Part shown: positions 5,650 to 45,797 of the stretch, one piece after another
Position numbering within the stretch: the first letter of the stretch is position 1
How the letters are laid out: each line of letters begins with the position of its first letter
Assembly (NCBI GenBank): GCA_051313645.2
Contig: JBNRSN020000003.1
Coordinates: 431,706,001 to 431,770,000 of the forward strand
Direction of reading: 5' to 3'
DNA length: 64,000 bases
Source: Centroscyllium fabricii
Lineage: Eukaryota
Made by a program: the position numbers and the translations under genes
The notes under the pieces: model-generated
Told to the model about the DNA's origin: nothing
What the model saw: only the letters and a program-made list of their open reading frames with translations
Database searches by the model: none

Positions 5650-5946
5650 CAGGTTGAGCACCGTTAATCCGGCACCCTCGGGACCAGGCCGGTGCCGGAC
5701 CACTGAAAATTCCGAACCACTAAAGGTTCGAGGGGAGTGTGCGGTAGAACACTCCCCGGGAGGGAGTCCGGGGATAGAACACTTACAAAACCGAAAAAAA
5801 ACAGAAACCCAAACGCCCGACGCCTTCGGTGCTCGCTCACCCTTCGCGGGAAACGGTGGCGCCGCCGAGTGGCTGCTCCGCAAAATGAAGAGCACCGGTT
5901 TCCAATCGTGCCGGACCATCGGGTGCCGGATTAGGTGCTCAGCCTG
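5650..5946. mobile_element. Tigger/pogo-like MITE
   Basis: TA TSD; TIRs CAGGTTGAGCACCGTTAATCCGGCAC / GTGCCGGATTAGGTGCTCAGCCTG; same payload as the 52991 copy, in the opposite orientation. Confidence 0.85.
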
Positions 5947-26594: not shown

Positions 26595-27164
26595 CAAGGT
26601 TGAAGTTCGTTAATCCGGCACAGGCGGGATCAGGCCCGTACCGAACAAGTGAAAATCCCGAACGATTGAAGTTTTGGCGAGCGCATGCGCAGACCATTCA
26701 AAATGGCCACCGCGAAAGGCCGGCGGCCATTCTGAGTGGTCTGCACATGCGCTGATCGTTCGGGGAGGCTCGCAGCGGCCAGGCTCGGGCAAGCTCGCAG
26801 CGGCCAGGCTCGGGGAAGCTCGCAGCGGCCAGGCTCGTGGAGGCTCGCAGCGGCCAGGCTCGTGGAGGCTCGCAGCGGCCAGGCTCGAGGAAGCTCGCAG
26901 CGGCCAGGCTCGGGGAAAGCTCGCAGCTGCCAGGCTCGTGGAGGCTCGCAGCAGCCAGGCTCGTGGAGGCTCGCAGCGGCCAGGCTCGGCCATTGTGAAT
27001 GATCTGCGCATGCACTCGCCGTTCGGCGGCACATGCGCAGATCATTCTGCCAAAGCATCGATCGCGGTGGCCATTTTGCACATGCGCAGGGCAGTTGGGG
27101 AAATTATTGCCGGACGTTCGAAGTTGCCGGTTTTTCGGGTGCCGGATTAACGAACTTCAACCTG
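26595..27164. mobile_element. Tigger/pogo-like MITE with an internal 25-bp minisatellite
   Basis: TA TSD and TIRs; about 9 units of GAGGCTCGCAGCGGCCAGGCTCGTG at about 26762-26989. Confidence 0.87.
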
Positions 27165-37688: not shown

Positions 37689-39182
37689 CTATGGAAGGAG
37701 GACCAAAGGTAATGACAGGTGTACTGATGCACTTAACAAAATCAAGACACTGTGTTTAACAAGTCTGTCTCTTCATCATTTATAAACGACACAAAAACCA
37801 TCTAAATGTAAAAATCAATGCTCTCCTTCAGTTGTGATGGTAAGAAGGTTAAACAACTGGATTTTTCAAAGATGACTTTCGTGCCAACCCGGGATTAATA
37901 GGCTGAAAGCAACCTGTGGTGAGACAACACAGATATGCCACTGAGGCCATGATATTCTGCTGCAAAGTGCACCATCTAGTGGCCTGGAAGACACCCATCA
38001 AATCTTATGGCAAGTGGGTAATAAGAACATAAAAAATAGGAGCAGTGGGCGGCCATACGGCCCATCGAGCCTGCTCCGCCATTCAATAAGGTCGTGGCTG
38101 AAGTTCTACATCAACTCCGCTTTCCCGCCCTATCCCCATATCCTTCGATTCCCTTAGCGCCCAAGAATCTATCGATATCAGTCTTGAATATACTCAATGA
38201 CTGAGCATCCATTGCCCTCTGGGGTAGAGAGTTCCAAAGATTCACACCCTCAGTGAAGAAATTTCGCCTCATCTCAGTCCTAAATGGCCGACCCCTTATT
38301 CTGAGACTATGACCCCTGGAGAGATAAAGGATCAAATCTGCAGGGAAATCACAGAGGTGTGCAAGAAATATATTGTTGTGATATTGGGGGACTTTAATCT
38401 CCCAAATATCGATTGGGATAATGTTAAAGTAAAGGGAAAGGAGGGGGAGGAATTTCTGAAATGTGTTCAGGAGAACTTCCTTGACCAGTATGTTCTCGGC
38501 CCAGCTAGAAAGGAGGCATTGCTGATCTGATGCTGGGAAATGAGGTGGGCCAAGTGTCTGTGGGAGAACACTTGGGTAAGAGTGATCATCGTATCATAAG
38601 GTTTAGATTAGAAATGGAGAAGAGCAAGGAACAATCTAAAGTAGAACATCTAAATTGGAAGAGGGCTAACTTCAATGGGATGAGAGGAGATCTAGCCAGG
38701 GTAAAATGGAACCAAAGATTGACAGGAAAAACTGTAATGGAACAATGGGTGATCTTTATGGAGATGATGTTTCAGGTACAGGCTAGGTACATTCCAACAA
38801 GAGGGAAAGGTAGGGGAACCAAAGCCAGGGCTCCATGGATGACGATAAGAGGGTGTATGATGCATGTCAGGTGAATTCTTCAAGTGAGAACCAGACCAAA
38901 TACAATAAGTTGAGAGGGGAAGTGAAGAGGAAACTAAGACTGGCAAAGAGAGAATATGAGAATAGAATGGTAGTTAACATAAAAAAGAACCCAAAAATCT
39001 TCTACCGGCATGTAAATAGTAAGCAGGTAGGAAGAGGTGGGGTGAGACCTATTCGGGACAAAGAGCTTAGAGACGCAGGACAAGGCTAGAATACTTACTT
39101 AGTAAACACTGATACAAAGTACTCATTAAGAGGATACAGGTTGAAGTTCATTAATCCGGCACCCGAAAAACCGGCAGCTTCA

Positions 39183-39587
39183 CGGCACGGTGGCATAGTG
39201 GTTAGCACTGTTGCATCACAGCACTGGAGACCCGGGTTCAAATCCAGCCTCGGGTACTATCTGTGTGGAGTTTGCACATTCTCCCCGTGTCTGCGTGGGT
39301 TTCCTCCGGGTGCTCCGGTTTCCTCCCACAGTCCAAAGATGTGCGGGTTAGGTTGATTGGCCAGGATAAAGTGACCCGTAGTGTTAGGGGGATCGAATAT
39401 GTGGGGTTACGGGGATAGGGTGGGATATGTGTCGGTGCAGGTTCGATAGGGATCGAGGGATATGGGGACAAGGCAGGGACAGGGTACTGGGTTTGGATGA
39501 TCAGCCATGATCTCATTGAATGGCGGAGCAGGCTCGAAGGGCCGAATGGCCTACTCCTGCTCCTATCTTCTATGTTTCTATGTTTCA
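39183..39587 (+). mobile_element. HE1-type V-SINE (full length) inside the Pack-MITE
   Basis: tRNA head, V-domain and CR1 tail ending ctatgtttctatgtttc. Confidence 0.88.
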
Positions 39588-39680
39588 GTCGTTTGGCACA
39601 GATTTTCCCGACGCCGGCACAGACAATTCAAAATGGCTGCCGTCGGGGCTGGGCTTCCCTTACACCGAACATATACTCAC

Positions 39681-39795
39681 TGGATCCCGGCTTAGTGACC
39701 ATTCCGATGCCGATGGTGAATCCCAGGCCCAGAAGATGAGCTGTTGTGACAGCTGCCTTTCGCAGGACGCGATACAGGCAATGCTCGGTGCCCAT
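39681..39795 (-). pseudogene. CYB561D2: Transposon-captured first coding exon of CYB561D2 (cytochrome b561 family member D2)
   Basis: gcagcgATGG (strong Kozak context), then MGTEHCLYRVLRKAAVTTAHLLGLGFTIGIGMVTKPGS(S) and a |gtgagt donor; aligns by eye to human CYB561D2 [38 protein letters not shown] (recalled); lies inside a TIR element, no other exons present. Confidence 0.88.
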
Positions 39796-40069
39796 CGCTG
39801 CCGGAGGCTCCTGCCTGGCTGCGTGCTGACGTCACCGCGTTCCGAAGCTGGCGTGCGGTGGCGTCACGTGAGCCGGGCTTGAGCCGCACATTGGGCCTCA
39901 GGCCCGCTGAAGCCGTGCACTCCCTGATCCGCAGCAGAATCGATGGCTGCGTGCTGACGTCACCGCGTTCCGAAGCTGGCGTGCGGTGGCGTCACGTGAG
40001 CCGGGCTTGAGCCGCACATTGGGCCTCAGGCCCGGTGGAGCCGTGCAGCCTGACCCGCAGCAGAATCGA
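39796..40069. promoter_or_regulatory. Captured CYB561D2/NPRL2 bidirectional promoter, present as a 128-bp tandem duplication
   Basis: CpG-rich; units at about 39816-39943 and 39944-40069; each has a CRE TGACGTCA (39827, 39955) and an E-box GTCACGTG (39863, 39991). Confidence 0.75.
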
Positions 40070-40112
40070 GTGAGAGTTCCACCCGACCCGTGGGCCGAAA
40101 ATCAACTGGCAG
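40050..40112 (+). pseudogene. NPRL2: Transposon-captured, disabled first exon of NPRL2 (GATOR1 subunit)
   Basis: CTG (presumed former ATG) TRSRIE*EFHPTRGPKINWQ|gtacc versus human [26 protein letters not shown]|V (recalled); apparent 12-nt deletion creating TGA; head-to-head with the CYB561D2 exon as in mammals. Confidence 0.86.
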
Positions 40113-41010
40113 GTACCAGCGAGCGCATGCGCAGAGCATTGAAAATTTTGTGTCAGCCATTTTGAATGTTCTGTGCATGCGCCGCCGTAACTGCAGTAAT
40201 TCGGTGTTTTCAACGATCCGGCAGGGTGCTGGTCCCGACCTTGCCGGATTAATGAACTTCAACCTGTACTGACAAAATATCGGTAGAAGCGGAGATGGCA
40301 GAGGTAATGGATGGAGTGCAAATTGATGGGCAGGGTGTATTGGAAAGGCTGGATATGCTTAGAGTGCATAAGTCGCCTGGTCTGGATGGCTTGCATCCCT
40401 GGTTGCTAAGGGAAGCGGGGGTGGATAGTGGAAGGGCTTGCCATAATCTTCCAATCTTCCCTAGATATGGGGGAGCCTGCCAGAGGATTGGAAAATGGCA
40501 AAATGTGACACCCTTATTCAAGAAAGGGTGTAAAGACAATCCTAGTAACTATAGGCCAGTCAGTTTAACATCAGTAGTGGGTAAGGCTTTAGAAACAATA
40601 ATCAGGGAAAAAATTAACAGGCACTTGGAGAGGTTTAAGTTAATTAATGAGAGCCAGCATGGATTTGTAAAAGGCAGATCTAATTGAATTTTTTGATGAA
40701 GTGAGAGAGAAGGTTGACGAAGGGAATGCAGTGGATGTTGTCTATATGGATTTTAAGAAAGTGTTTGACAAAGTACCACATATGAGGCTGGGTAACAAAA
40801 TTGAGGCTCCTAGAATAGGAGGGTCAGTGTCAGCTTGGATAAGAAATTGGCTTAAGGACAGAAAACAGCGAGTCGTGGTAAATAGTTGTTTTTCAGACTG
40901 GAGGATGGTAGACAGTGGTATTCCCCAAAGGTCAGTGCTAGGACCACTGCTTTTTTTGATAAATGACTTGGATATTGGAATACAGAGTAAAATTTATAAA
41001 TTTGCCGATA

Positions 41011-41541
41011 CAGGTTGTGCACCATTAATCCGCCACGGGCGGGACCAGGCCCGTGCCAGGAAATGGAAAAAACCGGGAGAACGAGTTTGGACACTGCGCA
41101 TGCGCGCCAGTCAAAATGGCCGCGCGCATGCGCGCAGCATTGCGATTGGCTGGCGCGCGCATGCGCAGATCGGGCCCGGGTCCGCCGTCCCTCTCCATCG
41201 CCTTTGGGGTTGCTGCTGCCGCCGAGCGGGACTCAGGCTGACAGCTGTTGCCTAGTGACTGTCCGCCTCAGTCACGGGGCTCAGCTGTCGAGAAAATAAC
41301 GGGCGGCCGTATTGAATTATCTGCGCATGCACTAACCGTCCGGCGACGCATGCGCAGATCATTCAAAACACCCGCAGCTGTTTTGAATGATCTGCGCATG
41401 CGCTCGGCACATGCGCAGATCATTCGCTGAAGCCACGATGGGGGCTGCCATTTTGCGCATGCGCAGTGCAGTCGGGGCAATTTGTGCCGGCAGACTGAAG
41501 CTGCCGGCTATTCGGGACACGGATTAACGGTGCTCAACCTG
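41011..41541. mobile_element. Tigger/pogo-like MITE inserted at the CR1 RT FADD motif
   Basis: tttgccgaTA|CAGGTTGTGCACCATTAATCCG ... CGGATTAACGGTGCTCAACCTG|TAccaccaaactt; CpG-rich unique payload. Confidence 0.87.
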
Positions 41542-44383: not shown

Positions 44384-44698
44384 CAGGTTGTGCACCGTTA
44401 ATCCGGGACCCGATGGTCCGGCACGAATCCGTCTGGCCAGCCCACGTGATCCCAGGGACGCTCGCGATGTGCGGGCTTCTCCCTGACTGGTCTACGCATG
44501 CGCAGCGGCCATTTTGAATTGTCTGAGCCTACGCGGCGGCCATTTTGAATGGTCTGCGCCTACGCGGCGGCCATTTTGAATGGTCTGCGCATGCGCAGCG
44601 GCCATTTTGAATGGTCTGCGCATGCGCTCCCCGAACCTTCAGTGGTTCGGATTTTTAAGTGGTCCGGCACCGGCCTGGTCCCAACGGTGCACAACCTG
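44384..44698. mobile_element. Tigger/pogo-like MITE with a 31-bp tandem repeat
   Basis: TA TSD; TIR CAGGTTGTGCACCGTT; 4 units of GCGGCCATTTTGAATGGTCTGCGCATGCGCA with period 31. Confidence 0.85.
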
Positions 44699-45233: not shown

Positions 45234-45797
45234 CAGGTTGAGCACCATTGATCCGTTACCCGAAAAGCCGGCAACTTCGAACGTCCGGCAATAATTTCCC
45301 CGACTGCCCTGCGCATGTGCAAAATGGCCACCGCGATCGCTGCTTCGGCGACTGATCTGCGCATGCGCCGCCGAACGGCGAGCGCATGCGCAGTTCATTC
45401 ACAATGACCTCCCCGAGCCGATCCTACCCGAGCCTGGCAGCTGCGAGCCTCCCCGAGCCTGACCGCTGTGAGCCTGCCCGAGCCTGGCCGCTGCGAGCCT
45501 CTCCGAGCCTGGCCGCTGCGAGCCTGCCCGAGCCTGGCCGCTGCGAGCCTCTCCGAGCCTGGCCGCTGCGAGCCTGCCCGAGCCTGGCCGCTGTGAGCCT
45601 GCCCAAGCCGCTGCGAGAGCCGGGTCTCCCCGAACGATAAGCACAAAAGCAGACCACTCAAAATTGCCGCCGGCCTTTCGCGGCGGCCATTTTGAATGGT
45701 CTGCGCATGCGCGCGCCGAAGCTTCAATCGTTCGGGATTTTCACTTTCCCGGCACGGGCCTGGTCCCGCCCGTGCCGGATTAACGGTGCTCAACCTG
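45234..45797. mobile_element. Tigger/pogo-like MITE, inverted sister of the 26595 copy
   Basis: TA TSD and TIRs; about 7-8 units of the same 25-bp minisatellite. Confidence 0.87.

Follow-up and report, generated by a model that had tools for sequence, protein, structure and literature searches.

Within a 64,000-nt stretch of the Centroscyllium fabricii genome (contig JBNRSN020000003.1, positions 431,706,001 to 431,770,000; hereafter the window), a 1,130-bp miniature inverted-repeat transposable element (MITE) at positions 39137-40266, termed copy A, carries CpG-rich sequence that resembles the 5′ coding ends of two host genes, CYB561D2 and NPRL2, in divergent orientation. We put the probability at roughly 0.8 that copy A is a Pack-TIR, a terminal inverted repeat (TIR) transposon with captured host sequence, that it holds a DNA-level copy of the CYB561D2-NPRL2 promoter region, and that it is a single copy, either inert or at most weakly active as a promoter. 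The structure was read from one assembly, in which the window contains no N.

The element and the boundaries of its cargo

Copy A is non-autonomous and ends in perfect 25-nt TIRs (39137-39161 and 40242-40266), each flanked by a TA dinucleotide (39135-39136 on the left, 40267-40268 on the right). The resulting 27-nt arms, at 39135-39161 and 40242-40268, are 100% complementary, which bears out the initial annotation of perfect repeats with a TA target-site duplication. When the window was searched for the 25-nt TIR with up to three mismatches, four occurrences were found against 0.00 expected from 100 shuffles; two are the ends of copy A and two are the ends of another element at 26596-27164. 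The sequence on both sides of copy A belongs to an old long interspersed nuclear element (LINE), and the open reading frames (ORFs) immediately downstream match RVT_1. The plus-strand LINE frame runs up to the left TA as ...*ED and is taken up again at the right TA as TDKISVEAEM...KSPGLDG. Because this frame is continuous when one TA is counted, copy A represents a genuine transposon insertion with duplication of a TA target.

The element belongs to a MITE family whose members are ∼565 bp long. Searches with parts of copy A by blastn, together with alignments, reveal no fewer than three further full copies within the window: copy B (26596-27164, minus strand), copy C (45234-45797, plus strand), which is 86% identical to B over 573 columns, and the more diverged copy D (41023-41541, minus strand). 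Family fragments are present near 44500-44690 and 5650-5728. Copies B, C and D are free of cargo and have both arms in common, with GC-rich palindromic modules and a minisatellite of 25-26-bp units between the arms. Judged by the TA target-site duplication, which is also seen at copies B and C, the carrier is a Tc1/mariner-type MITE. The more specific label “Tigger-like”, used in the initial annotation, stays a guess. A transposase domain was not found in the nine ORFs scanned of the 23 that are at least 130 amino acids long; four of these match RVT_1 and one matches ALKBH8_N.

The two arms of copy A align to two different ends of B, C and D. The left arm is split. Its first portion, including the TIR (39137-39181, 45 nt), is 95.6% identical to positions 27164-27120 of copy B, and its second portion (39588-39646, 59 nt) can be aligned to C, B and D through the ...CAAAATGGC... 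module. Between the two lies a plus-strand insertion at 39182-39587 that resembles a short interspersed nuclear element (SINE), with a tRNA-like head, a short-repeat tail and boundaries placed by eye; copies B, C and D are uninterrupted at this point. A possible 4-nt duplication, TTCA, is visible by eye at the ends of the insertion, and Rfam gives no match at its gathering threshold within 38500-41000. The right arm (40119-40266, 148 nt) can be aligned to C, B and D from ...GCGAGCGCATGCGCAG onward, and blastn matches it at 77% to both 26707-26597 and 45686-45797.

The cargo occupies 39647-40118 (472 bp), where it replaces the central minisatellite portion of the family, and blastn finds no match to it elsewhere in the window apart from a tandem duplication within the cargo itself. 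The breakpoints fall at 39646/39647 on the left and 40118/40119 on the right. To the left of the first breakpoint, the local-alignment score of 39600-39646 against the family was reached by 0 of 1000 shuffles. To its right, the score of the 34 nt at 39647-39680 against the three family copies was reached by 980 of 1000 shuffles, a value that indicates sequence other than backbone; control segments from the cargo gave 246, 798 and 706 of 1000. A hint in the MAFFT alignment that these 34 nt might be decayed backbone was rejected on the basis of this test. Given that the family arms are retained, the family centre is gone and 472 bp of foreign sequence are present, copy A has exchanged its central part.

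Could this arrangement have been created by the assembly, through a misjoining of the cargo or its duplication into a MITE copy among GC-rich repeats? The palindromic arm modules are GC-rich and recur in many copies, and thus can mislead assemblers. Yet a single insertion accounts for both arms, the perfect TIRs, the TA flanks and the flanking LINE sequence, the left cargo junction lies in unique sequence rather than in repeated modules, and no N interrupts the window. We therefore regard a misassembly as quite unlikely.

Gene fragments in the cargo

On the minus strand, an ORF of 55 amino acids at 39628-39795 opens with an ATG at 39795 and begins MGTEHCLYRVLRKAAVTTAHLLGLGFTIGIGMVTKPGS. Among 1,835,955,588 representative proteins, phmmer returned two matches to this ORF at E ≤0.001. 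The named match is transmembrane reductase CYB561D2 isoform X4 of Chiloscyllium punctatum (E 6.1e-4, 55% over query residues 4-41); the other, an unnamed 67-amino-acid protein, was not used. A direct BLASTP comparison of the ORF with C. punctatum CYB561D2 gives 21/42 identities with an E value of 5e-14. In the reverse direction, four shark CYB561D2 proteins searched by tblastn against all 64 kb of the window hit only 39801-39667, at 50-63% identity and E values of 3.8e-8 to 7.9e-11. These searches agree with the initial assignment of the peptide to the CYB561D2 N-terminus.

When the 39-residue peptide was aligned with 12 named orthologues, the closest were those of elasmobranchs, with identities of 67% for Heterodontus, 64% for Hemitrygon, 62% for Carcharodon, 54% for Chiloscyllium and 51% for Scyliorhinus. 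Identities to five bony vertebrates are 36-46%, below this elasmobranch range of 51-67%. Two rows of the alignment are uninformative, as the N-terminus is missing from Mustelus isoform X2 (0%) and diverges in the Callorhinchus model (13%). The MAEPS start that is common to all five elasmobranch proteins is absent from the cargo, in which the ATG is displaced inward by three codons. This reflects either a difference in the source species at this position or decay of the copy.

Similarity to CYB561D2 stops at ...KPGSS. The last exon base is 39681, and it is followed directly by GTGAGT (39680-39675, minus strand), such that both the ATG and the donor proposed earlier are present. The divergent N-terminus of the Callorhinchus model rejoins the family alignment just before LFSWHP. 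Taken together, the donor and this rejoining point hint that the junction of exon 1 and intron 1 lies at GTGAGT. The coding part of exon 1 would then span 39681-39795 (38 codons plus 1 nt), and the 34 nt at 39647-39680, over which protein similarity has ended and similarity to the backbone is lacking, would be the start of intron 1.

On the plus strand, a fragment at 40050-40118 reads ...SLTRSRIE, followed by a TGA stop at 40071-40073 and then EFHPTRGPKINWQVPASACAEH, as had been described. The 22-residue peptide encoded by 40074-40139 was compared by phmmer with 177,635 distinct Protein Data Bank (PDB) sequences. Two matches were returned at E ≤10, and both are the GATOR(1) complex protein NPRL2: residues 14-30 of 6ces_N (E 0.014) and residues 35-51 of the longer chain 8fw5_B (E 0.015). 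The first 15 aligned residues include 12 identities. The frame shifted by one base (40073-40138) has no match in PDB and none in Pfam. Relative to PDB numbering, several codons are absent around the TGA, and the RIE that precedes it presumably resembles NPRL2 as well. Followed back to the preceding stop, over 20 codons, the frame contains no ATG.

This segment had been taken for NPRL2 exon 1, ending in a GT splice donor. The similarity to NPRL2 holds, but the match runs past Q through V and P, beyond the supposed donor at 40113-40114, and ends at 40118, with backbone from 40119. Because the match continues through Q-V-P up to the backbone junction, the GT is more likely to be part of a Val codon than a donor, and the capture breakpoint more likely cut the NPRL2 coding sequence near codon 29. 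Of the claim that the entire promoter was acquired with both first coding exons, we therefore retain CYB561D2 exon 1 with its intron start and the spacer, and not a whole NPRL2 first exon. On their sequence features, both captured pieces rank as pseudo-exons: a stop and the absence of a start codon make the NPRL2 fragment untranslatable in its present form. The ATG, the open frame and a consensus donor are all retained in the CYB561D2 exon, so that transcription initiated in the spacer could in principle yield an RNA spliced into downstream sequence on the minus strand.

Both gene starts lie in the expected divergent layout, and this would equally be the case if the region were the true CYB561D2-NPRL2 locus with two separate MITE insertions flanking it. 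We consider this exceedingly improbable. No further CYB561D2 exon is present in the 64 kb, where all other tblastn matches have E values of at least 1.5, and the NPRL2 piece contains a stop, is without an ATG and ends at the backbone junction near codon 29. Moreover, the two arms are different ends of one element, with perfect TIRs, one TA duplication and one interrupted LINE. The reading was rejected on the finding that the four shark CYB561D2 proteins detect exon 1 only.

Just as little credence attaches to a chance resemblance of GC-rich sequence internal to the MITE to two proteins. Both peptides are short and neither has a Pfam match. Nonetheless, two independent database-wide searches each returned the predicted protein as the only named match or the only match, the pairwise E value for CYB561D2 is 5e-14, and the other reading frame of the NPRL2 region matches nothing. 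In addition, the two genes are neighbors in human, where part of the gene list for 3p21.31 runs ZMYND10, NPRL2, CYB561D2, TMEM115 (PMC6678546).

Spacer, duplication and proposed route of capture

The CpG-rich spacer between the two coding starts (39796-40049) is presumed to be their shared promoter. It contains TGACGTCA at 39827 and 39955 and CACGTG at 39865 and 39993, which correspond to the cyclic AMP response element (CRE) and E-box motifs noted previously. Each motif occurs twice because 126/128 bp are duplicated in tandem at 39816-40069, with units at 39816-39943 and 39944-40069, a period of 128 and 95% matches. With one unit removed, the distance from the ATG at 39795 to the first NPRL2-like codon is ∼128 nt, close to the ∼126 bp claimed earlier. 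No difference separates the units over their first 91 nt, and the four substitutions and single 2-nt indel that distinguish them are confined to unit positions 92-113. By a hand estimate, the clustering of five events in the last 37 of 128 positions has a probability of ∼0.002 under even decay. Two template switches or gene conversion may account for the clustered differences.

The arrangement of the cargo argues for capture at the DNA level, in line with the initial proposal: the divergent coding starts, the spacer of a type that is not transcribed, and the GTGAGT with non-backbone nucleotides after the exon are not those of a retrocopy. In the proposed series of events, a non-autonomous TIR MITE would have lost its central part, including the minisatellite, and gained ∼346 bp from the head-to-head CYB561D2-NPRL2 promoter region of its host. 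The copied piece would start ∼34 nt within CYB561D2 intron 1, take in exon 1 and the spacer between the genes, and end around NPRL2 codon 29, and the 126/128-bp spacer stretch would have been duplicated in tandem, either later or during copying. Most likely, a double-strand gap arose within the MITE and was filled from an ectopic chromosomal template by template switching. The element would have inserted at a TA inside the LINE, and the SINE would have entered the left arm of an already formed MITE, before or after the capture and the duplication. Capture may have taken place at the present site or may have preceded transposition to it.

Several points weigh against this account. Identity of the CYB561D2 piece to known elasmobranch proteins does not exceed 51-67% and the MAEPS start is missing, which is compatible with more than one source species and degree of decay. 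Pfam gives no family for the 55-amino-acid ORF or the NPRL2 22-mer even at E ≤10, because both peptides are too short for its filters. Taken alone, the NPRL2 match is weak (17.9 bits, E 0.014). The head-to-head orientation of NPRL2 and CYB561D2, which we take to hold in mammals, was not found stated in the literature searched. Both the direction and the source of copying are deduced from protein similarity only. Finally, at ∼136% of the length inferred for its source, the cargo exceeds the 80-120% range accepted by the published Pack-TIR pipeline.

An element of this kind might be mobile, now or until recently, and present in several copies, thereby spreading a compact bidirectional CpG-island promoter, complete with CRE and E-box motifs, along with a spliceable first exon. 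The perfect TIRs and intact TA duplication suggest ends still recognizable to a transposase, and the family is abundant, as the 64 kb contain four full copies and two or more fragments. The CYB561D2 exon has an ATG, an open frame and a GTGAGT donor, and vertebrate precedents exist in multicopy Pack-TIRs (PMC8277862) and in promoters carried by Helitrons (PMC4224331). However, the cargo is absent from all other family copies in the window, and just four published animal Pack-TIRs (given as 1.4%) are multicopy (PMC8277862). A single copy is the better bet, because of this absence from the other copies and the rarity of published multicopy cases, and we consider spread of the loaded element unlikely, although less so than the other alternatives discussed above.

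The base composition of the cargo could also be read in favor of an active, mobile promoter. Its CpG observed/expected ratio (o/e) is 0.89, in contrast to 0.22-0.25 in the LINE flanks, and the spacer units have a GC content of 0.69 and a CpG o/e of 0.97-1.01. However, high CpG is a property of the whole family and thus uninformative on promoter activity: the cargo-free copies have 61-66% GC and a CpG o/e of 1.05-1.12, compared with 0.48 for the window. The argument that CpG richness marks a young or active promoter was rejected on these grounds. The richness of the family in CpG could reflect germline hypomethylation, or simply young copies of diverged masters. Between copies B and C, 19 of 138 columns in CpG context differ and 64 of 436 elsewhere, such that CpG columns are no more variable than others.

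Other features of the family and its surroundings were also observed. The family arms contain palindromic GCGCATGCGC and AAAATGGC/GCCATTTT modules, putative NRF1- and YY1-like sites, and a 31-bp module is amplified 4.6 times in tandem at 44484-44627. The LINE that hosts copy A also holds copy D, ∼750 bp downstream, in its reverse-transcriptase region (40295-41541). Ten nucleotides to the left of the MITE insertion site, this LINE carries a 29-nt in-place inversion (39098-39126), in which the motif ...EYFVSVFTK is found on the minus strand, with plus-strand LINE on both sides and the frame kept. The inversion ends with short inverted repeats, CTTA and TAAG, identified by eye. Further away, a minus-strand ORF of 247 amino acids at 49323-50063 matches ALKBH8_N in Pfam (E 2.8e-18). 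It sits in a repeat-rich region and may be repeat-borne rather than a host gene.

Relation to known capturing transposons

The initial annotation knew of no description of promoter-shuttling Tigger-like MITEs in sharks, but the class of capture has already been described in animals under the name of Pack-TIRs by Tan et al. (2021, Nat Commun 12:4280; PMC8277862), who propose gap filling by template switching for most cases. TcMariner elements are the second most common carriers in that survey (115 of 370), and one example is the 5′ untranslated region of CAPSL captured in a frog hAT element (PMC8277862). A Pack-TIR is defined there by two ends of one TIR transposable element (TE), with no less than 10 bp of each terminus covered, by 100-5,000 bp of non-TE sequence between them, and by a unique parental copy in the same genome that is at least 90% identical, is not flanked by TEs and has a length ratio of 80-120% (PMC8277862). 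Copy A has two ends of one TIR TE and a 472-bp non-TE interior, and is not a retrocopy. Like the published Pack-TIRs (PMC8277862), it has had the interior of a TIR element replaced by non-TE host sequence with the target-site duplication kept. Whereas those elements are defined by an observed parental copy (PMC8277862), copy A is assigned by element structure and protein similarity, and its tandem duplication would push the length ratio beyond the published filter. Another point of difference from the survey (PMC8277862) is the cargo of copy A, which takes in a bidirectional promoter flanked by 5′ coding ends from two genes.

Promoters and first exons are captured by Helitrons in vespertilionid bats, with a bias toward gene 5′ ends (Thomas et al. 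2014, PMC4224331, citing Pritham and Feschotte 2007). The capture of a gene 5′ end in copy A is similar, although the bat captures reach high copy numbers (PMC4224331), whereas the cargo of copy A is seen once in the window. Helitrons are rolling-circle elements with a different capture mechanism and have neither TIRs nor a TA duplication, in contrast to copy A, which has both.

Plant Pack-MULEs are non-autonomous TIR elements that carry fragments of one or several host genes as DNA-level copies in which introns are kept. They belong to the Mutator superfamily and generate target-site duplications that are longer than, and distinct from, TA. Of the Pack-MULEs of rice, 36% are multicopy (PMC8277862). 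Copy A thus differs from these plant Mutator elements, many of them multicopy, in its animal host and its TA duplication.

No case of DNA-level capture by a TIR transposon in cartilaginous fishes was found in the literature searched, and the Pack-TIR survey, whose species and case lists are in its supplement, never uses the word “shark” in its main text (PMC8277862). Copy A is particular in its host lineage, in its cargo of a whole bidirectional promoter with parts of two genes, and in its CpG-island-like carrier family. It provides a clean and legible example, from cartilaginous fishes, of a TIR transposon that has captured host sequence at the DNA level. The cargo is unusual, in that a whole head-to-head promoter is accompanied by the 5′ coding ends of both genes, one of them an exon with a start codon and a donor. 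The exact breakpoints, 39646/39647 and 40118/40119, can be compared with the parental locus in light of a gap-filling model guided by microhomology. If copy A is single and silent, it is one more Pack-TIR. If further loaded copies exist, cut-and-paste elements, and not Helitrons alone, can spread ready-made promoters in vertebrates. A mobile, multicopy element would constitute a natural promoter-and-exon trap, with new transcription starts and chimeric transcripts across the cartilaginous-fish genome.

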